Positions 10,316 through 58,319 of a stretch of 64,000 nucleotides of DNA are shown here, piece by piece. The translations under genes were made by a program, and so were the position numbers. The stretch comes from Sphaerodactylus townsendi. Taxonomy: Eukaryota. Within the stretch, counting starts at the first letter, position 1, and each line of letters begins with the position of its first letter. The stretch spans positions 44,826,001-44,890,000 of the forward strand of contig NC_059426.1 of assembly GCF_021028975.2 (NCBI RefSeq), in the 5' to 3' direction. Under the pieces are notes generated by a model. That model made no database searches, was not told the origin of the DNA, and saw only the letters and a list, made by a program, of their open reading frames with translations.

Positions 10316-10501
10316 CAGTGGTTCTCAACCTTCCTAATGCTGCGACCCTTTAATACAGTTCCTCATTTTGTGGTGACCCCCAACCCTAACATTTATCCAT
10401 TTTACAGATGGAGAACACTGATGCAGAGAGTCTTAGGTGACCCCTGTGAAAGGGTCATTCAATCCCCAAAGGGGTCATGACCCACAGGTTGAGAATCACT
10501 G
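10316..10501 (-). mobile_element. SPIN (Space Invader)-type hAT MITE
   Basis: TIRs CAGTGGTTCTCAACCT / AGGTTGAGAATCACTG, perfect TSD GTCTAGGT; subterminal TCCTAATGCTGCGACCCTTTAATACAGTTCCTCA and GACCCCTGTGAAAGGGTC match the SPIN/URR1 ends as I recall them. Confidence 0.9.
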
Positions 10502-13370: not shown

Positions 13371-14657
13371 TCTTATTCACTGAGTACATTTTTTATTCTG
13401 CTTCTTCTCTCAGGAGTTTATGAGAATCTACATTGCAATCTCTTCCTCCCTTTTTTGCAGCCCTGTAAGGCAGAGGAACACTGGCCCAAGCTTCCTGTCA
13501 GAGTAGAACTTCGAACCTGGGTCCACCAATTCCTGATATTGAACAATTTTAAAAAATGCATCATGCTGGCTCTGTTTCTTTTATTTATCATATTTGTATC
13601 CTGCCTTTCTCCTGTGGATTCCTAGACAGCCTTCTAACCAGGCACAGATCAAATGCTGATGTTCTTAATTTCAGCAGGGCTGCTATGACATTTGGCTTTT
13701 TAGACCATGTCAGGGAACTCTCACAGAGAAATCAGTAGCTGCTACTTCAACAGCTATTGAGTCTAATCTCTGTACCTGTTAAGGCTTAGTTCAACTCTCC
13801 TGTGAATATTCTGATGTGTGTTTCCCCACCTCCACTGGACATTATTGGCTGCAGTTGGTGAAGGAGAGGAAGTATACACTGCAATAATGATAAAGTTGAA
13901 CTAAGTGTTTCTAGCAGTAGCTCTATGATATAGATTCTTCAGATTTTATGTTATTTTGACATCTTAGGTTTCTGTTTGGGGGGAAAAGCAGGTTTACAAA
14001 AAGTGGAAAAACACTGTATGAAATGCTTTGGTATTATTCCTGAGCACTGTAGGGCTTAATTTCTGGTACCCCATTACTAAAGTTGGAAGTAAGCGTGCCT
14101 TAAGATCAATATAGCAATGCTTTGTGACATGGAGAAATTGGAATTTGATCCCATGGAGACATAGCTGGTGCTAGTTCGTTTCAGTCAAGTCTTTTCACTG
14201 TTTTATTGTACCAACATGGATTGGGAAATATTAGTGATAGTATGGAAACCAGCCCATTGTATTCCTTTGGTCATGAGGCAGAACTGTGAATTGTCATGAT
14301 GCAATGTATTGTTGTTTGTTAAGAAAATGCTAGCTGAAACAATGAAACTGTTTTTGCACAATAGGATACGTAACACTTTGCCAGATGTCTGACAAAAGCC
14401 ATCTCTGTTGAATATTCGGAGCTGAGCACTGCTTTTTGACATATCCAGTAGACTGGGTCATACACATGCAAATGGATGCTGCAGAAGGAAAAGCGGTAGC
14501 TTCTTGAGGATAGGGTTGTGTGCATTTTCCATCATTTTTCCCCAGAATAATGTATTGTTACAATCATCTCTCGTCATACATATAACCAAGAATAATTAAT
14601 TACCCTTTGGTTAGGCTGATGTCCTGCTCATTAGTGACCGAATCATTTGCATCCCAA

Positions 14658-14817
14658 ACCAGTGTGGTATAGTGGTTAGAGTGATCTGGGAGACCCAGGA
14701 ACAAATTTCCACTCTGTCATTGCAACTTGCAAGGTGACCTTGGACCAGTCACACACACTCAGCCTAACCTGCCTCACAGGGTTGTTGTGAAGATAAAATG
14801 GAGGAGAAGAGAATAAT
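14658..14817 (+). mobile_element. tRNA/CORE SINE (Squam3-like)
   Basis: A-box TGGTATAGTGGTTAGAG, CORE-like GGTGACCTTGGACCAGTCAC, CCTCACAGGGTTGTTGTGAAGATAAAATGG. Confidence 0.8.
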
Positions 14818-15240
14818 GGCCCTTTCTTCACAAGCCCCTGAAAGCATTTTCAAAAGCCCCATTTGTCCACACTCACCCGCTCAAAAATGCTTCCTGGCTG
14901 CCATTTTGTAGTTGTTCATTTCCTTTTTAAAAACTCTATGGATTGGATGCTGTGATGCCTTGTGATTCTCTAGGGATCATGTCTGTGTAGCTACCCTCCT
15001 GAAATTAAAAAATAACTGATGTAAATACAGCACAAGATGGCCAGCATGAGCTCAAAAAATGGCAACGACAAGGAACTGGAGACTGCAGAGCAGCATGGGC
15101 TGAATTCCCACTGAAAATTTAATCTAGATACAATCAGGTTTCAAAAGAATAGGCACCTTTTCATCCAGGTTCCAATATCCCCACTGCAGCATGTTTCTAG
15201 TGAAGACTTCTAGGCCTGCCCCTTGGAAGGGTGCCTGTTG

Positions 15241-15597
15241 TCAGGGGTGCAATTGTTAAGCTAGCAGCACCAAAATTTCAGAGTACCTTTAGGAGACCCT
15301 CCTGATGATACCACCCAGGTTTGGTGAAGTTGGGTTCATGGGGCCCAAAGTTATGGGCCCTCAAATGTGTAGCCCCCATCTCCTATTAGCTCCCATTGGA
15401 AACAATGGGGGATGGGGCACCCCCTTTGGGAGTCCATAGCTTTGGAGCCCCTGGAACAAACTTCACAAAACCTGGGTGGTGTCAGTAGGAGACTCTCCTG
15501 ATGAGACCACCCAGGTTTGGTGAAGTTTAGTTCATGGGGGCCAAAGGTATGGGCCCTCAAATGTGTAGCCCCTATCTCCTATTAGCTTCCATTGGAG
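15241..15597. repeat. Fragment of the palindromic-unit array seen in the 50605-53090 element
   Basis: Same unit (CACCAAAATTTCAG..AGGAGAC.CTCCTGATGA.ACCACCCAGGTTTGGTGAAGTT..CCAAAGTTATGG) repeated at a 196-bp period, with a palindrome centred near 15492. Confidence 0.85.
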
Positions 15598-17799: not shown

Positions 17800-17976
17800 T
17801 AGGGTTGCCAGCCTCCAGGTGGTGGCTGGAGATCTTCCACTATTACAACTGATCTCCAGGAAATAGAAATGGCTGATGTAGTAGTGGGAGGCTGTGGCAT
17901 TATACCCTGTTAAAGTCCCTTTGCTTCTTATCCACCCCCAAAATTGGTATTTTCCAACCCATATCTGGCAACCCTA
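17800..17976. mobile_element. hAT-like MITE with TAGGGTTGCCAG TIRs
   Basis: Perfect 12-bp TIR pair TAGGGTTGCCAG / CTGGCAACCCTA; TSD degenerate. Confidence 0.75.
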
Positions 17977-43729: not shown

Positions 43730-44786
43730 GTAAGTGCAACACTGTATTTCTACCTCTGCCCTGATGTTAGATCTATAAATACTGAGAAAAAGTAACGGGT
43801 CCACATATAAACTCCTTATTTATCTGCCAGAAATCTGATTTTTAGGCTTTTGTCATAGTTAGTCCCCAGATATTTTAATATTAGATATTGACATAGTATG
43901 GGTGCAAGGATATCCATTCATGAAGTACAGTTTTCCTGCCTCTCCCAAAGCAGCCTAAAATGTACTCCATATCCCATTCATTTTACAGGGGGGACAGGAT
44001 TTGGGAGTAATTTAGGACTACATGGAATGTGGGAAATTGCACTCCTTGAGTGGAAATTCTTGCAACTGGGAAAAATCTTAATTTGGATCCAATCCATTAT
44101 GACTGAGTTGAGCCCTTTTGTGGTTCTAGCAGCAAGTAGGCAAAATGAATTCCTCCCTCCCTTCCTCCCTCCCTCCCTCCCTCCCTTTCATTCTGCATTA
44201 AAAATATCCTATCAATGAACTCTGAGAGGGAGAGTCCAGGACACAGTGGCCAAAAAAAGATGATGGAAGGAACCTTGCCCCCCCCCCATCTTTTTGCACA
44301 AAAGTTGTACTGCCTTGTATACTGCTTGTAACATGCAGCAAGAAAGAAGAAAGGCAGAGATTATTTTCTGATACCATCTGATTTACGATATGGATTGTGC
44401 TTGAGAGCATTACATAAATACAGGTATGCCATGAATGCAAGTATTCCACCACACAAACACAGCACTTTTTGGTACTTTAATTTGATGCCAATAGAAAAGT
44501 TACACACGCACAAAGTGGAGCCTTGCTGCATGAAAACTCCACATTCCAAACTTAGCAGTGTGTCATGTTGGGAGGTGAGAACCTTCTTAAGAATGTGTGA
44601 ACCTCAACATCTCTAAAAGTGTGAATCATCCCCATTGTTCTCTGCTCTTAAGTATTAATTAAGTACAGGAATGGTCAATTGAACCAGAATGAAAACATTC
44701 ATTCACATTTAAAATATGTGATTTTAACCTATTTTTGCTGCTTCTTTTTTTTTTTTAGGCTCCTGCTTCTCTTGATACACCTAGGT

Positions 44787-44934
44787 CAGGGGTAGGGAAC
44801 CTGCGGCTCTCCAGATGTTCAGGAACTACAATTCCCATCAGCCCCTATCAGCATGGCCAATTGGCCATGCTGGCAGGGGCTGATGGGAATTGTAGTTCCT
44901 GAACATCTGGAGAGCCGCAGGTTCCCTACCCCTG
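44787..44934. mobile_element. 148-bp palindromic hAT MITE
   Basis: Near-perfect foldback CAGGGGTAGGGAACC...GGTTCCCTACCCCTG, TSD ACCTAGGT. Confidence 0.95.
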
Positions 44935-45767
44935 ACCTAGGTGATGAATTAGCAGCTCAAGTGTAACTCCAAGGACAGCTGATATACATTTGCTGCAATG
45001 TGATATATGTTAGGGATTTTAAAGAGGAAAAAGGTAATCCACCAGGGAGCAGGAAGAGCTCAAATTACTGTCCGCCATGAAGCTCACTGGATTAAATGGA
45101 AGGTTAGAAATCATATGTTTGAGGGACCTTCTTTAATTGTTTGAAATTTGAAATTTTTGAACGCATATTTGAAATTTTCATTGCTGTGTATTACTTATTC
45201 TTTTTTAAAATGCTTTTCATTAATTTTAATAAATCATTCTATTATTACACAGTCATTATGTCAGTACAATATACATTCAATATACATTAGACTCATGTTC
45301 ACTAACATTGTAAGGTAAAGTAATCCAATTAATTGGATTGTAATTCATTATACTTAATTTATCCAATAAACTTTCCCCTTTCAAAACAACATATCTTAAA
45401 TGAGTATAGGCTTCCCCATCAGGTTGGCTGAATCTGAGGAATTGAAAGAAAAAAAATTAAATGAAGGAATCAAACAAGAAATATTTCTCAAATAAATAAT
45501 CTTCTAATAATAAAGTTAAATCTAAATGTATATTTGTATACTTAATTTTCCATTAACAAGTGCTTACTAACCATTTGTTTTTTACCATTCTTTTCCAAAA
45601 ACTGCAAATATTCCTTCCAGGTTTCCTGGAACTTACTCCATGGTAGTTCCTGAACTGTAACTGAGGCTCATTCTGCACACGCAGAATAATGCACTTTCAA
45701 ACTGCTTTCAGTGCTCTTTGAAGCTGTGTGGAATAGCAAAATCCACTTGCAAACAGTTGTGAAAGAG

Positions 45768-46407
45768 TATTGTCGAAGGCTTTCACGGCCGGAATCACTT
45801 GGGTGCTGTGTGGTTTCCGGGCTGTATGGCCGTGTTCTAGCAACATTTTCTCCTGACGTTTCGCCTGCATCTGTGGCTGGCATCTTCAGAGGATCTGATG
45901 TTGGGAAAGCGAGTGGAGTATATATCTGTTGGAGTGTCCAGGGTGGGTGGGGAAACCTTGTCATAGCTTGAAGTAACAAAAGCTGGCAACCAGGTCAGAT
46001 TAGAAGTTGAGGGCATCTGAATAGAAGTAATGAGGTAACAATGAAGATCTGATAGCCTGGGAGTAACCCTGTAGATAGCAAGGTCACTGGTGGGAGCATC
46101 TGAATAGAAGTATCCTGGCCTTTGTTTCTTTTGTCTATGGTCATCCTGTGTTTGTGTGGAGCTGTTTGACACAGTCTTGACCCTAGTATTTTTCAACACT
46201 GGCAGCCAAGTTCTGTTCATTTTCAAATAATGATAAACCAACCTGGACATGGAATATTATTTGAAAAAACAGAAATTCTGGACCACTCTGAAAGCCACTA
46301 CGTCAGACTACACAGAGAAGCAATTGAAATCCATAAGCACATGGACAATTTTAACAGGAAGGAAGAAACTATGAAAATAGTACAGCCCGGAAACCACACA
46401 GCACCCA
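45768..46407 (-). mobile_element. Penelope-like retroelement fragment with internal inversion
   Basis: GIY-YIG C-terminal region NQPGHGILFEKTEILDH..RLHREAIEIHKH..NFNRKEE on + (46229-46378), its continuation KMNRTWLPVLK and the pseudo-LTR on -; 13-bp TSD AGTTGTGAAAGAG. Confidence 0.92.
45851..45893 (-). ncRNA. Minimal type I hammerhead ribozyme motif
   Basis: UCCU-CUGAAGA-U-GCC(loop)GGC-GAAAC-GUC-AGGA: stem I UCCU/AGGA, core CUGANGA and GAAA, GUC cleavage triplet, palindromic ACGU in place of stem III. Confidence 0.85.
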
Positions 46408-47555: not shown

Positions 47556-47696
47556 GGCCTCTTCCGCACACGCAAAATAATGTGTTTTCAAACCTCTTTC
47601 ACAACTGTTTGCAAGTGGATTTTGCCATTCCGCACAGCTTCAAAGAGCACTGAAAGCAGTTTGAAAGTGCATTATTTTGCATGTGTGGAATGAGCC
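47556..47696 (-). mobile_element. 141-bp PIF/Harbinger-like MITE
   Basis: Reverse copy of 42638-42778. Confidence 0.88.
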
Positions 47697-48571
47697 CCAG
47701 ACACTAGCATCTTAGGCCTCAGTGTTATTATAGCAACTCCTTCCAAGTTCCTGTGGAATTTGGGGCAGCTTTTAGTGTTATTACAGCAGGACAGACTAAA
47801 CTTTAGCTACTTTCCCCTGTTCTAAAAAGTTTCACCTTCCATCTCCAGGTCAGGATAGTTGGAGGCTAACCTCAGATAGATTTAGGAATAGGTAACTAGT
47901 CAGTTTTTTTTACAAAAACTTTTCTAATTGAATCAAGGTCAGTTTTGGAAAACTTTCACATTTGAAAAAAAGTTCTTAAAAGCTGTCATGGTTTGCTAGG
48001 TCAGCTACCTAAGGCACATAAATCCTCTATATCAGTTAACCAGATTTTGGCCAAGGGAAACCATGAATGGTAGAAAGAGACTGCACAGGAGCCCGGGGGG
48101 GGGGGAGGGAAGGAGAAAACGAGAGGGGGAGAGGGGGAGGGGAGAGTTTTGGCCTTCCCTCAGCCTGTGAGGAGACCTGCCCCACAACCATCTTCTACCA
48201 CTCATTGTCTGGCTGGAGTGGTACGATGAAGGTGCCTCGCAAGGCACTCGTCCTTGCTGAGGCAGCTACTGGGGCAGATCCCCCCTCACAAGACAGTGTA
48301 GGAACTGGCTCTGTGCAGGGACCTGCTGCATGGGCAGCTGATGTTGCCCGCCCCCACTTTCCAGCAGCAGGAGGAGAAAACACCTTACCTGTTCTTGGTG
48401 GTGAACTTGGAGGAGAGGTGCAACCCCTCCTACAGAGCTTTTCAGCCCCCAAGAACTCAAAAAATGCTAGAGGAACTAGGTGAGGAAGAGTTGCTGACAT
48501 GCCATCATTCTCCCTGATTACTTCTAAACTCAGCAGTCTTTCCAAGAGTATGCAGGAGGGAAGGGCAGAGT

Positions 48572-49515: not shown

Positions 49516-50604
49516 AAACAAATCTGGAAGATGTTACTCAAAGACTAGATGAGTTCCAGGCCACGGCAGCTTCGACATACAAAAAGAGCGAGGGTTTAGT
49601 TTGAGAAGTAAATTGAAGATGTGGAGACAACATTTGACAGCTTCAACATGATTACAGCTGTGAATAACAAGGAGTGCACTACCGTTCTAGAAAATCGGAT
49701 TACAGGCACCTGGCAGAAGATACTCACAGATACCTGGCAGTGCGTGAGCTGGGCTTGGTTTCTAGGTTGTTAATACAGACTGTGTGCTCTTCTGATGTTT
49801 TCAGGCACCAGTCTTAAGTGGCCGAGCACTGCAAAGGAAACAATGGTAGAAAAAAACTTCAAAGACAATATTGAAGGATAATGCACTGGTGCATAAATAA
49901 GTTCCAGTCCTTCCCAAGCATATCATAATCTCACATTGCCCCATTTTCCCTTTGTAGTGGTTTAATGCTCAGGAATGCTAGTGCTCAGTGGGTTCTTAGG
50001 GAAATCCACACGAATTGCGCTTTAAGGAAAACACATGCAGTGACATACAGACTCCTGCATCCCTACGGTCGGGAGGATCAGGTTGTACATTCAAATTAAA
50101 CAGTATACATTTCCTACTACATGTCCAAGTAGTGCTAGTGTGTTGAGCAATTGCTTGTGAATTGAAAGAGAGGAGGGAAAGACCCTGAGAAAGGGAGCGC
50201 TTGCATGACAGTCCATTATGAGTAAATGGAAGATTTATCCAGTGACACCCTCTAGTTCTGTTCTGTGTAAGCTGCCACAACTGGAATTGCCTCTTTGTAG
50301 CATGTCTGCAGAAGGCCAGCTGCTTTGGACCCACTCAATTGGGGCTCAATTAATTCAGGAGTTTGGCATTTTTCACATTAAAAACTGGGTTTCAGAGAGG
50401 CAGAACTTAAAATATGCAACCAATATGAGAAGTCTTTTTTTTTAAAAAAAAATACACATTATAGGAAGCAGCTCACCAGCTTGAAGTCTCAGATTCCTCA
50501 GGGAATCCTTAAAATGACATGCCTGGAGAAGCTCAACATCCTTGACTGTGCAGTTGAGGAGTCTCCCCACTCAGAGTTCTCGTGGACTTTTTCAAGGATT
50601 TCAT

Positions 50605-53090
50605 TAGGGTTGGAGATTCGGACAGTCCAAATCCGAATTTTTACCGAATCTGCACGGATTCGGACGGATTCGGACGAGCAGGAGCCGAATCTGAGCTGTC
50701 CGAATCCTAACAGATCCGAATCCATGGGATTCGGATTACCAGCCGAATTGCGTTTTTATTTTTTGGTGTTTTTTTCACATTTCGGCCTGCAGGGGAGACA
50801 TTTTTAAACATATCAGCACCAAATTTTCAGGGTATCATCAGGAGACTGTCCTGATGATACCCTCCAAGTTTGGTGCATTTTGGTTTAGGGGGGCCAAAGT
50901 TATGGACCCCCAAAAGTGGTGTCCCTATCCCCCCATTCTTTCCAATGGGAACTAAGGAGATGAGGGCTACCCTTTTCAGGGTCCATAACTTTGGCCCCCC
51001 TGAACCAAACTGCACCAATCTTGAGGGTATCATCAGGACAGTCTCCTGATGATACACTGAAATATTGGTACCGATACATCTACAAATACGCCCCCTGCAG
51101 GCACCCCCAGAAATTTGCACAAGATTCTTTGTTCTGCAGTGACTTAGCTGCATTGCTGTCAATAGGGAATTTCTGAGGGGGCTGTGGAGTGCACATTTTT
51201 CATGGTAAACCCACAAAACTTTCAGGGTATCTTCAGGAGAGTCTCTGGATGACACCATCCAGGTTTGGGGAACTTTACTTCAGGTGGAAGTGGGAGATGG
51301 GCCCTACCCTTTTGGGTCCCATAGAATTAACCCCCCTGAAGCAAAATTCCCCAAACCTGGATGGTGTCATCCAGAGACTCTCCTGAAGATACCCTGAAAG
51401 TTTTGTGACCATACCTTCAGAAATGTGCACCTCACAGCCCTCTACCAGAAATTCCCCATTGACAGCAATACAGCCAAGTCACTGCAGAACAAAGAATCTT
51501 GGGCAAATTTCTGGGGGTGCCTGCAAGGGACGCTTATTTTGAGATGTATCGGCACCAAATTATCAGAGTATCATCAGGTGACTGTCCTGATGTTGCCCAC
51601 CAAGTTTGGTGCAGTTTGGTTCAGGTATGGACCCTCAAAAGGGGTGCAACTATCCCCCATTGTTTCCAATGGGAGCTGATAGGGGCTACACCTTTGAGAG
51701 TCCATAACTTTGGCTCCCCTGAACCAAACTGCACCAAACTTTGGGGGTATCATCAGGACAGTCTCCTGATGTTACCCTGAAAGTTTGGTGTCACTAGCTT
51801 TAAAAATGCTGGTTTGCGTGTTTCACCGCTCACTCACTCCAGCAGGCTTCATGTGCAGGAGCGGTGAAACATGAAACCGGAATTTTTAAAGCTAGTGGCA
51901 CCAATTTTCAAGGTATCATCAGGAGACTGTCCTGATGACACCCCCCAAGTTTGGTGCAGTTTGGTTCAGGGGGGCCAAAGTTATGGACCCTCAAAGGTGG
52001 CCTCTATCCCCCATTGTTTCCAATGACAGCTAAGGAGATGGTGGCTACCATTTTGAGGGTCCATAACTTTGGCCCCCCTAAACCAAACTGCACCAAGCGT
52101 GGGGGTGTCATCAGGACAGTCTCCTGATGATACCCTGATATTTTGGTGCTGATATGTCTAAAAATGTGCCCCTGCAGGCACCCCCAAAAATTTGCCCAAG
52201 GTTCTTTTTTCTGCAGTGACTTCTGCATTGCTGTCAATGTGGAATTTCTGGTGGAGGGCTGTGTGGTGCACATTTATCAAGGTACAGTCACAAAATGTTC
52301 AGGGTATCTTCAGGAGAGTCTCTGAATGACACCATCCAGGTTTGAGGAACTTTGCTTATGGGGCAGTGGGAGATGGACCCTACCCATAACATTGAACCCC
52401 TTGAAGCAACGGTCACCAAACCTGGATGGTGTCATGAAGAGACTCTCCTGAAGACACCCTGAAAGTTTTGTGGGTTTACCATGAGAAATGTGCACTCCAC
52501 AGCCCTCCCACAGAAATTTCCTATTGGCTGCAATGGAGCCAGCCAGCCACTACAGAGCACAGAATCTGGGGAAATTTCTTTGGGTGACTGTGAGGGGTGC
52601 AGTTTTAGAGCTACTGTCACCAAAATTTCGGGGTATCATAAATGTACTGTCCCTATGATACTCCCCAAGTTTGGTGAAGTTTGGTTCAGGGGTCCAACGT
52701 TATGGACCTTCAAAAGTGTAGCCCCCATCTCCTGTTAGCTTCCATTGGAAACAATGGGGGATGGGGCACCCCTTTTGAGTGTCAATAACTTTGCCCCCCC
52801 TGAACCAAACTGCACCAAACTTGGGGAGAATCATCAGGACAGTCTCCAGATGATATCCTGAAATTTTGGTGCCGCTAGCTTTAAAATTGCGTCCCCTGCA
52901 GGCCAAAACGTGTAAAAACACCCAAAATTCAAAAAAAAATAATAAAACGGACCCGAATTTTTCGGATTTACCCGAATTTTCGGGTATATCCGAATTGGCT
53001 ATGATTCGGATTCGGGCATACAAATCATTTTATGCCCCAAAATACCCAAATCCGAATTTTACCGAATTTTTTTAGTATTGACCAACCCTA
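50605..53090. mobile_element. 2,486-bp non-autonomous hAT-type foldback element
   Basis: TIR TAGGGTTGG / CCAACCCTA, perfect TSD GATTTCAT, subterminal CCGAAT/ATTCGG clusters, interior of 12 alternately oriented units, no credible ORF. Confidence 0.93.
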
Positions 53091-53231
53091 GATTTCATAG
53101 CTCCATCTTTAACTTCACATTTTCTTCCAGCACTTTCTATCAGATTTTTATCCATTCCTCCTTCTAAGGAGATCAGAGGGGCATACGTGGCTTTCCATTC
53201 CCCAGTTTGACATCACAACAACTGTCCTGTA

Positions 53232-53423
53232 CAGTGGTGGGATCCAAGAATTTTAATAACAGGTTCCGATAGTGGTGGGATTCAAACAGTGGCGCCGCCG
53301 CACACACGCACCTCCAGTCCCTATTGGGCAGGGAGGTTGCTTTAGTAAACCCTTCTCGGCACTCAGAAAAAATTATTAACCACTTCTAGAGAAGCGGTGA
53401 GAACTGGTTGGATCCCACCTCTG
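53232..53423. mobile_element. hAT MITE inserted in an old SINE
   Basis: CAGTGGTGGGATCCAA / TTGGATCCCACCTCTG, TSD GTCCTGTA/GTCCTTTA. Confidence 0.85.
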
Positions 53424-53629
53424 GTCCTTTAAGATATGTTAGGCTGACAGTACTAATGCCCTGAGCTGGTGAACCTTCTACTCCTGCTGTTTTGCTCACA
53501 TGCTGCAGGTGGTGCACCCCCACACTTGCTGGGCTATGGTTGCCAGCTCATGGTTGGGAAATACTTGAAGATTTGGGAGATTGGGCCTGAGGAGGGCCGG
53601 GTTTGGGGAGGGGAGGTATTCCAACAGGG

Positions 53630-57060: not shown

Positions 57061-58171
57061 NNNNNNNNNNNNNNNNNNNNNNNNNNNNNNNNNNNNNNNN
57101 NNNNNNNNNNNNNNNNNNNNNNNNNNNNNNNNNNNNNNNNNNNNNNNNNNNNNNNNNNNNNNNNNNNNNNNNNNNNNNNNNNNNNNNNNNNNNNNNNNNN
57201 NNNNNNNNNAGAAACTTTCCCATAGATGCATTATTGTATAAGGAATCATCTGTATCCGCATACTGTTCTTGAATGGAAAATACAGCTTTATTCCCATAAA
57301 CCACTAATGTCAAGTATCTGTTCCTGCAACAAGGTAGATTTTAAGAAGTGGAGGGGTGCTCTGAGACAGAATCTCTGCAATACAAACCCAAGGAAGGAGC
57401 CATGCATTCTCAAGCTGGTATCGCGCTGCCAGCAGCTCATCCAAAGCTTTTACATGTCGCCAGATCTGCTCCAAACTAACACAGTTTGCAAAGTGGAAAG
57501 AAAAGGAATTGAAGAAGCAAAAATAAATATTACAGCACGTAAGAATTAAACACTGCCTACTTAAATAGCAATTAAGCTTCTGAAAACAAGATCATCACAC
57601 CTGTACAAGAAAAGACATGCACGCTNNNNNNNNNNNNNNNNNNNNNNNNNNNNNNNNNNNNNNNNNNNNNNNNNNNNNNNNNNNNNNNNNNNNNNNNNNN
57701 NNNNNNNNNNNNNNNNNNNNNNNNNNNNNNNNNNNNNNNNNNNNNNNNNNNNNNNNNNNNNNNNNCACAATTCGATGCATGAATAATTCAGCTTGTTTCC
57801 AGCAAGATATTTTAAAAGTATGCAACTGTATTTATTTATTAATAAATACATAGGTTGTCCTGTAAGACATGTAGGTTATTCCTCCCCCTCATATTCAGAT
57901 CAGCCATAATCATTTCTTTTTAGTGTAAATACAAATCAAAAGGTCTGATAATGAGGACAAAGGAGTCTTCTCGGTGTTCTAGGGAAAGAAAATCATCATT
58001 TCTGATACAGTTTTACAGAAGTGATAGAAGATAGATTGACTAAAGTACAAATCTAATTCTTCACTCAGAAAATTGTTGATGATTTTGAATTTTGGTTATA
58101 TACTTTTCCTGTTTCTTACTTCTTAATATACTAAGTGAAAGAAGGCATCACAGATTATCCATTGTCTAAAG

Positions 58172-58319
58172 CAGGGGTAGGGAACCTGCGGCTCTCCAGA
58201 TGTTCAGGAACTACAATTCCCATCAGCCTCTGTCAGCATGGCCAATTGGCCATGCTGGTAGGGGCTGATGGGAATTGTAGTTCCTGAACATCTGGAGAGC
58301 CGCAGGTTCCCTACCCCTG
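58172..58319. mobile_element. 148-bp palindromic hAT MITE
   Basis: Near-identical to 44787; TSD GTCTAAAG. Confidence 0.95.

Follow-up and report, generated by a model that had tools for sequence, protein, structure and literature searches.

A non-coding hAT-type transposon with six long hairpin-forming modules arrayed in tandem

The stretch at positions 50605-53090 of the 64-kb window, that is, of the whole length of DNA that was analyzed, looks palindromic at every scale, and this raises the question of what kind of element it is and how its interior was built. It is a real non-coding "cut-and-paste" hAT-type transposon of 2486 bp with six long hairpin-forming modules inside and, striking as it looks, it is basically ordinary mobile DNA, part of a very abundant repeat family common to several related genomes. 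The features that make up its two ends are given below, with the strand where one was assigned.

50597-50604: left target-site duplication (TSD) GATTTCAT; the same 8-mer is found at 53091-53098
50605-50613, + strand: left terminal inverted repeat (TIR) TAGGGTTGG, with a hAT-type YARNG terminus; perfect reverse complement at 53082-53090
50614-50752: left subterminal region, 10 CCGAAT/ATTCGG hexamers in both orientations, CpG observed/expected 1.44; presumed transposase-binding sites
52936-53081: right subterminal region, 7 CCGAAT/ATTCGG hexamers plus variant CGAA cores, CpG observed/expected 2.04
53082-53090, - strand: right TIR, 9/9 against the left TIR
53091-53098: right TSD GATTTCAT, 8/8 match to 50597-50604

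Elements of the hAT superfamily have short TIRs with a 5'-YARNG terminus, and the termini found here, which begin TAGGG and are complementary at all nine positions before pairing stops at base 10, fit this rule, as the 8-bp duplication fits the TSD length of the superfamily. Both the 9-bp TIRs and the perfect 8-bp TSD described in an earlier note on this DNA were found base for base. Exact TAGGGTTGG sites occur three times in the 64-kb window, twice as the ends of the element and once at 10380-10388. Since a single perfect TSD flanks both ends, the element was inserted here as one piece, in a single event.

The subterminal clusters of CCGAAT that had also been described are equally clear, with 10 copies of CCGAAT/ATTCGG in 50616-50748 and 7 in 52953-53067, together 17 of the 20 present in the whole window. 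This distribution is highly non-random, and the hexamers are putative transposase-binding sites, presumably comparable to those of Ac/Ds; the Ac transposase uses subterminal hexamers, in that case AAACGG. The two subterminal regions are not inverted copies of one another, and over 148 and 155 bp they do not align as inverted repeats.

No credible open-reading frame was found in the element, as the earlier note had stated. The longest is 143 codons, the repeats have open frames on either strand, and no match came from a protein search with this longest frame, which runs across the first two modules. A Pfam search with the ten longest open-reading frames of the window found nothing, indicating that no transposase is encoded nearby, and no autonomous hAT transposase frame (BED finger, DDE, hAT C-terminal dimerisation domain) was present within the 64 kb. 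A tRNA scan was also blank. The 8-bp TSD, the TAGGG terminus, the asymmetric hexamer clusters and the lack of a reading frame all agree with the previous assignment to the non-autonomous hAT elements, and we consider it very probable, taking our explanation as a whole, that this is a non-autonomous member of the hAT superfamily whose cargo is a tandem row of palindromic modules. The parts of that cargo are listed below, where the strand of a module is that of its asymmetric loop core.

50753-50798: left inner edge and linker, inverted-repeat partner of 52890-52935 (50753-50932 against 52756-52935, 180 nt, 82% complementary)
50799-51087, +: module A1, arms 50799-50935 and 50963-51087, asymmetric loop core
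51089-51532, +: module B1, a 444-bp hairpin, MFE -206 kcal/mol, z -37
51536-51808, +: module A2, arms 51536-51658 and 51678-51808
51789-51900: central palindrome, core arms 51820-51831 and 51859-51870 with a 27-nt loop, extended by the A2 and A3 linkers
51882-52166, +: module A3, arms 51882-52012 and 52047-52166, direct with respect to A1 (direct repeats of 93% and 86%)
52169-52600, +: module B2, arms 52223-52357 and 52404-52538 (82%), direct with respect to B1
52601-52889, -: module A4, arms 52601-52732 and 52756-52889, inverted relative to A1-A3
52890-52935: right inner edge and linker, partner of 50753-50798

The interior thus consists of six palindromic modules in the order A-B-A-centre-A-B-A, four A modules of about 290 bp and two B modules of about 440 bp around a short central palindrome, giving 12 arms of alternating orientation. 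The earlier note had seen 12 units in strict forward/reverse alternation, paired into hairpins in the order A-B-A-A-B-A, and both observations are accurate: the arms alternate +/- as described, and each module folds as a single long ssDNA hairpin. Because each module is a palindrome, however, a row of such modules looks mirror-like at every scale, and six of them in tandem simply give the appearance of "twelve alternating units". The module folds have MFE z-scores of -17 to -37 (-122 kcal/mol and z -21 for the A1 block, 50785-51102), the central block (51786-51900) reaches -39 kcal/mol with z -12, and the whole element folds at -931 kcal/mol (z about -90), compared with -410 for a neighboring control of equal length. 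In B1 the outer arms (51089-51175 and 51446-51532) are 93% identical and the inner arms (51176-51287 and 51332-51443) 88%, and the B arms share 64-77% identity with the A arms. A 35-bp mini-hairpin said to be present in every unit is perfect at 50829-50863 in A1 and fair to good in the eight A arms (-9 to -23 kcal/mol), but it is degenerate in the four B arms (-5 to -7).

Given this layout, a central question is whether the row grew by iterated foldback, from half-unit to hairpin, from hairpin to hairpin pair and from there to a whole mirror, leaving a true self-similar symmetry about 51845 as the earlier note had proposed. The central palindrome is indeed centered at 51845, only 2.5 bp from the element midpoint of 51847.5, and the two halves align slightly better in inverted (80.6%) than in direct (78.0%) orientation. 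Mirror pairs of arms likewise average 85% identity against 83.5% for direct pairs, the left arm of B1 groups with the right arm of B2 (84/90), and one linker type is common to the right side of A2 and the left side of A3, across the centre. The loop cores, on the other hand, are oriented A1+, B1+, A2+, A3+, B2+ and A4-, so that B1/B2 and A2/A3 are direct and only A1/A4 is mirrored, and direct repeats with a period of 1075-1078 bp reach 86-93%. A1 is flanked on both sides by linker type L1 and A4 on both sides by L2, and the best A pair, the left arm of A1 with the right arm of A3 (91%), matches neither model. In a tree of the arms, the four B arms formed a clade (100/98) and the eight A arms formed another, apart from a copy outside the element (83/87), which sets B apart from A, but within A the arms formed an unresolved star that gives no order of duplication.

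Judged from these data, true mirror symmetry does not extend over the whole element, and the fit of a direct repeat of about 1078 bp is about as good; the apparent whole-element symmetry arises because every module is itself palindromic. Growth by repeated foldback duplication found no support as stated either: judged by the orientation of the loops, the types of linker and the identities between arms, the interior is a mosaic that matches no pure model, whether foldback or tandem. On a direct versus a mirrored origin, these three kinds of evidence contradict one another. Flipping of loops through exchange between arms could rescue the foldback model but is untestable on a single copy. We regard iterated foldback growth as unlikely, while the coincidence at the midpoint, the 80.6 versus 78.0% fit and the grouping of the left B1 arm with the right B2 arm leave room for one large foldback step.

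The extremely stable folding, together with a mini-hairpin spacing of mostly 188-205 bp, might also suggest that the array is a selected structure, acting as an end-pairing scaffold, as a source of long hairpin RNA or small RNA, or in nucleosome phasing at about 190-200 bp. The arms within one hairpin, however, differ by 11-27%. Just 7 among the 117 predicted pairs have changed in a compensatory way, many are no longer able to pair, and the term for covariation is unfavorable (+13). With so many unpaired mismatches and so little covariation, the arms look like decaying palindromes rather than a conserved structure. Among the listed runs that contain the stretch, none is on record as RNA. Rfam searches at permissive and gathering thresholds returned only sub-threshold generic miRNA-hairpin matches, with a best value of 41.7 bits (mir-584) where the gathering threshold is 80, indicating that this is not a member of a miRNA precursor family. 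No hammerhead family matched at E<=1 or at the gathering score; CTGATGA is present in the mini-hairpin, but the hammerhead core pattern (CUGAUGA ... GAAAC) is absent from the window. Selection for structure is accordingly a quite improbable account of the array.

The state of the ends differs from that of the interior. The CpG ratios of the two subterminal regions compare with 0.13 in the interior and 0.25 across the 64-kb window, and 2 candidate decayed hexamers were found against 17 intact ones. Because the ends keep their CpGs while the interior is CpG-poor with arms that already differ by 7-27%, the internal duplications probably predate the insertion of this copy, in keeping with the earlier statement that the array was mobilised intact. 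The CpG contrast, the intact hexamers and the perfect TSD and TIRs suggest that the array had already diverged when it was inserted and that this insertion is recent; the retention of CpGs could instead reflect a lack of methylation and not youth.

Palindromic hAT MITEs are dense in the window, and an array might in principle have been built by insertion of such elements into one another, in the manner of double Ds. Two of them, at 44786-44937 and 58171-58319, resemble the element in having an 8-bp TSD and a CAGGG/TAGGG-type terminus and in forming one end-to-end hairpin, but each is a single hairpin of about 150 bp from another sequence family, with no hexamer clusters and no array. Within the interior at 50753-52935, TAGGGTTGG is missing even when one mismatch is allowed, as are exact copies of CCGAAT and ATTCGG, and so the interior harbors no nested full elements. 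There are also no internal 8-bp duplications at the module borders, so that both the internal termini and the TSDs of a double-Ds-type composite are missing. This reading is already largely refuted, and nested transposition is a most unlikely source of the array.

Other copies of the family were tracked in the contigs of four public runs, each with the code of a different organism; contig depth in these runs is not copy number. In one run (X1) the summed contig depth was 0.5-11 million across the element compared with 63 on the unique left flank, and the pattern was similar in the runs of the three other organisms, so that the ends and modules are extremely high-copy in the runs of all four. 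Contigs from other copies bridge the junctions between subterminal region and module on both sides, a 1486-nt contig crosses the junction of left flank and TIR without a mismatch, and a contig from another run begins exactly at base 50605. In many other copies of the family the sequence diverges after 51871. The ratio of B-core depth to end depth was about 0.6-1.8 in all four runs while the A arms were 6-66 times more abundant, which, as a weak indication since depth is not copy number, suggests that B is linked to these ends and that A is shared with other families. Contig joints that skip 360, about 725 or 1066-1079 bp were discounted as shorter family variants, the contigs being short and the shorter side only 18-40 nt. 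One A-type copy also lies elsewhere in the window:

15213-15596: separate truncated linker and A-module copy with three arms (+ - +), 75-84% identical to the A modules and outside the clade of the eight A arms

This copy has neither a hAT end nor a CCGAAT cluster, and the A4 loop core has the same orientation as its own. A repeat at 14640-14820 is one that we take to be SINE-like, and it suggests that the DNA may come from a squamate reptile. The novelty claimed for the architecture is weakened by the abundance of its ends and modules in the runs of four coded organisms, by the junctions in other copies and by an A module that stands without ends; a literature search turned up neither a squamate hAT element described as having a hairpin array nor the core 19-mer of the module. 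Collections of metagenome, genome and viral contigs, scanned for exact occurrences of the most conserved 19-30-mers of the module, gave a single match, a 19-mer in an Acidobacteria MAG, which is about the chance expectation for a database of that size. An assembly artefact, whether a chimera formed by foldback or a repeat that was collapsed or expanded, can be given almost no credence: palindromic arrays are difficult to assemble and no contig aligned here spans the whole element, but the arms are 73-93% identical whereas a read-level foldback chimera is expected to be near-identical, each module has substitutions and indels of its own, neither the TSD nor the TIRs are damaged and the left junction is crossed by the mismatch-free contig.

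Among the closest known systems are the Ds-type elements of the Ac/hobo branch, such as maize Ac/Ds and hobo-N of Anolis carolinensis, with which the element shares an 8-bp TSD, a short TIR starting with TAGG, asymmetric ends, the lack of an open-reading frame and many short CpG-containing subterminal hexamers in both orientations. At 2486 bp it falls within the 1.3-3.4 kb size range of Anolis hobo-N, the interiors of which are unrelated "foreign" DNA, made up of TE fragments and genomic DNA, in contrast to the ordered array of hairpin modules here (PMC3014272). The hobo_AC TIR (TAGGCTTGMTC) also differs from TAGGGTTGG, and the survey of Anolis DNA transposons contains no TAGGGTTGG family and does not mention palindromes, hairpins or subterminal repeats (PMC3014272). 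Foldback transposons (Drosophila FB, Galileo of the P superfamily, Tetris, and the Mutator-related FARE/Tm1; reviewed in PMC9659126, PMC3688188, PMC3169594) are similarly self-complementary, internally repetitive and non-coding, with ssDNA that snaps back. Their fold, however, comes from long TIRs (hundreds of bp to kb) of direct tandem repeats, whereas here terminal complementarity ends after 9 bp, FB-like long TIRs of tandem subrepeats are absent, it is the separate palindromic modules lined up in the center that make the element self-complementary, and the superfamily is different. MITEs with internal tandem repeats that seed satellites, namely Xstir and miDNA4 of Xenopus and Tetris of D. 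virilis, share a non-autonomous nature, a multiplied interior and a module that is also found outside the element, but their interiors are head-to-tail direct repeats while the module here is a 290-440-bp palindrome, with one flipped (PMC9659126).

Returning to the reading of the element as a non-autonomous hAT transposon with a tandem cargo, we propose that it would be mobilised in trans by a hAT transposase that may recognise the 9-bp TAGGGTTGG termini and the CCGAAT hexamers of the subterminal regions of about 140 bp, using these hexamers as Ac transposase uses its own. The modules descend from a single hairpin module that is dispersed in huge numbers in the source and related genomes, and the array most likely formed before the copy at 50605-53090 was inserted. 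Likely routes would be duplication based on recombination or replication, such as unequal exchange, a switch of template at a hairpin while a gap is being repaired, or the flipping of a loop between arms. The present copy would then be a fairly young, passively carried insertion with hairpins that decay neutrally.

A more far-reaching possibility, which we consider doubtful, is that the source genome and its relatives hold a distinct class of hAT elements in which the cargo is an ordered "accordion" of hairpin modules, with a layout kept from copy to copy through snap-back pairing of the ends or through silencing hairpin RNA, an undescribed hAT-based counterpart of foldback transposons. Should a family of thousands of copies turn out to have the multi-hairpin layout as its norm, this would provide such a counterpart, and it would also represent an abundant source of cruciform- and recombination-prone DNA with a risk of inversion, deletion and replication stalling, a plausible source of long hairpin RNA, and a trap for assemblers and repeat annotators, by which the element would be split into many "MITE" matches. 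The element itself opens no new mechanism; it is a well-preserved example of how a hAT transposase can move a long and already diverged palindromic array as a single unit.

The element, a non-coding hAT-type transposon whose interior is a hairpin array, spans 2486 bp of the window (50605-53090), and its insertion was a single event bearing the hallmarks of hAT transposition. No run of N falls within the parts analysed.

Ends of the element (positions in the window)
50597-50604 and 53091-53098: TSD GATTTCAT, identical 8-mer either side of the element
50605-50613, plus strand: left TIR TAGGGTTGG, perfect 9-bp inverted repeat
53082-53090, minus strand: right TIR, complement of TAGGGTTGG, perfect 9-bp inverted repeat

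TIR pairing ends at base 10, and the whole window holds three exact TAGGGTTGG sites, two of which are these TIRs. The left and right subterminal regions (~140 bp) are not inverted copies of one another, and together they hold 17 of the 20 CCGAAT/ATTCGG hexamers of the 64-kb window (10 left, 7 right, in both orientations). The CpG observed/expected ratio is 1.44 and 2.04 in these regions, 0.13 in the element interior and 0.25 in the window, which has a GC content of 42%. An identical 15-mer, CCAAATCCGAATTTT, occurs at 50627-50641 (22 bp in from the element's left end) and at 53046-53060 (30 bp in from its right end), as a direct and not an inverted repeat. No credible ORF was found in the element, the longest being 143 aa and both strands of the repeats carrying ORFs; a protein search with the element ORF returned no relatives. 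The earlier note's 9-bp TIRs, perfect 8-bp TSD, CCGAAT clusters and absence of coding capacity were thus all recovered, and the testable hAT features found here (8-bp TSD, YARNG terminus, subterminal motif clusters), with the lack of a credible ORF, bear out a non-autonomous hAT identity.

Searching the window by BLAST with the first arm located 12 arms in strict +/- alternation, all at the positions previously proposed, which pair into six palindromic modules in the expected order A-B-A-A-B-A.

Modules of the interior and a separate copy (positions in the window)
50799-51087: module A1
51089-51532: module B1
51536-51808: module A2
51789-51900: central palindrome, core arms 51820-51831 / 51859-51870
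51882-52166: module A3
52169-52600: module B2
52601-52889: module A4
15213-15596: truncated linker-plus-A copy (the 15.3-kb copy), three arms (+ - +), no hAT end

Each module alone folds as one long DNA hairpin (z -17 to -37 versus shuffled controls), and the whole element folds at -931 kcal/mol compared to -410 for a same-length neighbouring control. Module B consists of an A-like but diverged core, 64-77% identical to the A arms, inside an additional 87-bp inverted pair. The ~35-bp mini-hairpin ascribed to every unit is perfect in the first copy (50829-50863); all eight A arms have a recognisable version, but in the four B arms it is degenerate. In the 15.3-kb copy, which stops abruptly at 15596, arms 2 and 3 pivot on the mini-hairpin itself, without a linker. 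Past 51871, contigs that match the right arm of the central palindrome (98 in public run X1, 65 in run X7) carry on with a different sequence that they share; the palindrome may be a fragment of some other repeat or of the longer interior of a progenitor.

Loop cores, the unpaired asymmetric middles of the modules, are oriented + in A1, A2, A3, B1 and B2 and - in A4, so that A1/A4 is the only mirrored pair; the twelve-unit alternation itself carries little information, because six palindromes in a row must alternate. Growth by repeated foldback duplication, as the earlier note proposed, agrees with the two halves of the element aligning at 80.6% inverted and 78.0% direct, with a mean arm-pair identity of about 85% in mirror and about 83.5% in direct pairing, and with a central palindrome whose midpoint (51845) lies 2.5 bp off that of the element. 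However, B1/B2 and A2/A3 share the + orientation, A1-B1 recurs in direct orientation as A3-B2 with a 1075-1078-bp period and 86-93% identity, and neither the linkers (L1 flanking A1, A2-left and A3-right; L2 flanking A2-right, A3-left and both sides of A4) nor the closest A pair, A1L-A3R (left and right arms; 91%), follow a mirror or a direct scheme. A maximum-likelihood tree places the four B arms in one clade (100/98), within which B1L and B2R group together (84/90), and the eight A arms in another (83/87) apart from the 15.3-kb copy; it separates A from B arms but gives no order among the A arms. Neither one foldback nor one tandem scheme accounts for the array, whose history probably comprised several duplications plus inter-arm exchange, which could flip loops too. 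One large inverted step is possible, given the near-central palindrome, and the 'self-similar at three scales' look is largely a by-product of stacked palindromes with an imperfect global mirror.

A read-level foldback chimera fits poorly, since near-identical arms would be expected from it, and those of the element are 7-27% apart and carry private indels; one 1486-nt contig of a public run spans the left flank/TIR junction without mismatch. Elements jumping into each other did not build the array, because the interior lacks internal TSDs, exact CCGAAT/ATTCGG hexamers and TAGGGTTGG sites, the last even with one mismatch allowed.

The CpG-bearing subterminal hexamers (17 intact versus 2 decay candidates), together with a TSD and TIRs free of mismatches, point to a fairly recent insertion, while the CpG-poor interior and its already diverged arms indicate an older array, which together support the proposed mobilisation in one piece. 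By analogy with Ac/Ds, a transposase provided in trans would bind the subterminal hexamers and cut at the TIRs, with the hairpin array as passive cargo; the array could have arisen by unequal exchange, or by hairpin template switching during repair or replication. Across five A modules, compensatory change was found in 7 of 117 predicted pairs, many pairs were broken and the covariation term was unfavourable; the hairpins look like palindromes decaying neutrally. Rfam gave sub-threshold hairpin matches only and no hammerhead. Speculatively, snap-back of the element might bring both ends together, and read-through transcripts might form long hairpin RNA.

The region 50100-53600 was compared with contigs from four public runs, each coded as a different organism. 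In the best run, summed contig depth, which is not a copy number, was 63 on the unique left flank versus 0.5 to 11 million in the element's bins, with a similar profile in the other three, which shows very high repeat abundance for the termini, the subterminal regions and the B modules, and most of all for the A modules. Contigs of other copies and organisms bridge both subterminal-to-module junctions, and another contig has its first base precisely at 50605, so the combination of these ends with this module is a family trait and no local accident. The B-core/end depth ratio was about 0.6-1.8 in all four runs and A-arm depth 6-66 times higher, a faint hint, summed depth not being copy number, that B accompanies the element's ends and A is common to other families, with which the lack of a hAT end in the 15.3-kb copy agrees. 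The element differs from the family majority letter at at least 28 positions among those listed, plus 140 further differences, and is thus ~1% to several percent diverged from it.

Other repeats lie in the window. Two ~150-bp, almost perfectly palindromic hAT MITEs (44786-44937 and 58171-58319; arm complementarity 98% and 94%) have termini beginning CAGGGGTAGGG, clean 8-bp TSDs (ACCTAGGT and GTCTAAAG) and, in each arm, ACTACAATTCCCATCAGC, similar to a ZNF143/THAP11-type motif. A ~177-bp MITE (17800-17976; termini TAGGGTTGCCAG) shares its first 8 bases with the element's TIR, its flanking 8-mers agreeing at 5/8 only, and a related terminus seems to begin near 53537. Another hAT-type MITE (~193 bp, 53233-53425; termini CAGTGGTGGGATCC / CAGAGGTGGGATCC), 142 bp right of the element, is flanked by 8-mers alike at 7/8 (GTCCTGTA / GTCCTTTA) and is extremely high-copy in the runs compared (bins 53142-53492). 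The tRNA-derived SINE-like repeat at 14640-14820 is presumably a squamate 'Sauria'-type SINE and, along with the CpG depletion (0.25) and 42% GC of the window, points to a lizard or a snake as the probable source. Two 112-nt arms 1.8 kb apart (45661-45772 / 47589-47700; 92% complementary) look like oppositely oriented copies of another dispersed repeat rather than a single element.

TIRs of only 9 bp set the element apart from classical foldback elements. In size and in the unrelated interior that it carries, it is close to Ds-like and Anolis hobo-N elements (PMC3014272), but its termini differ and the hairpins inside it form an ordered array. Multiplied interiors are already known from MITEs, but the repeats there are direct (PMC9659126), in contrast to the palindromic modules here. 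A literature search found no published description of a hAT layout with an ordered hairpin array; given its abundance, automated repeat libraries almost certainly hold pieces of the element. The element is real and its novelty modest, a variation on already known non-autonomous hAT elements.
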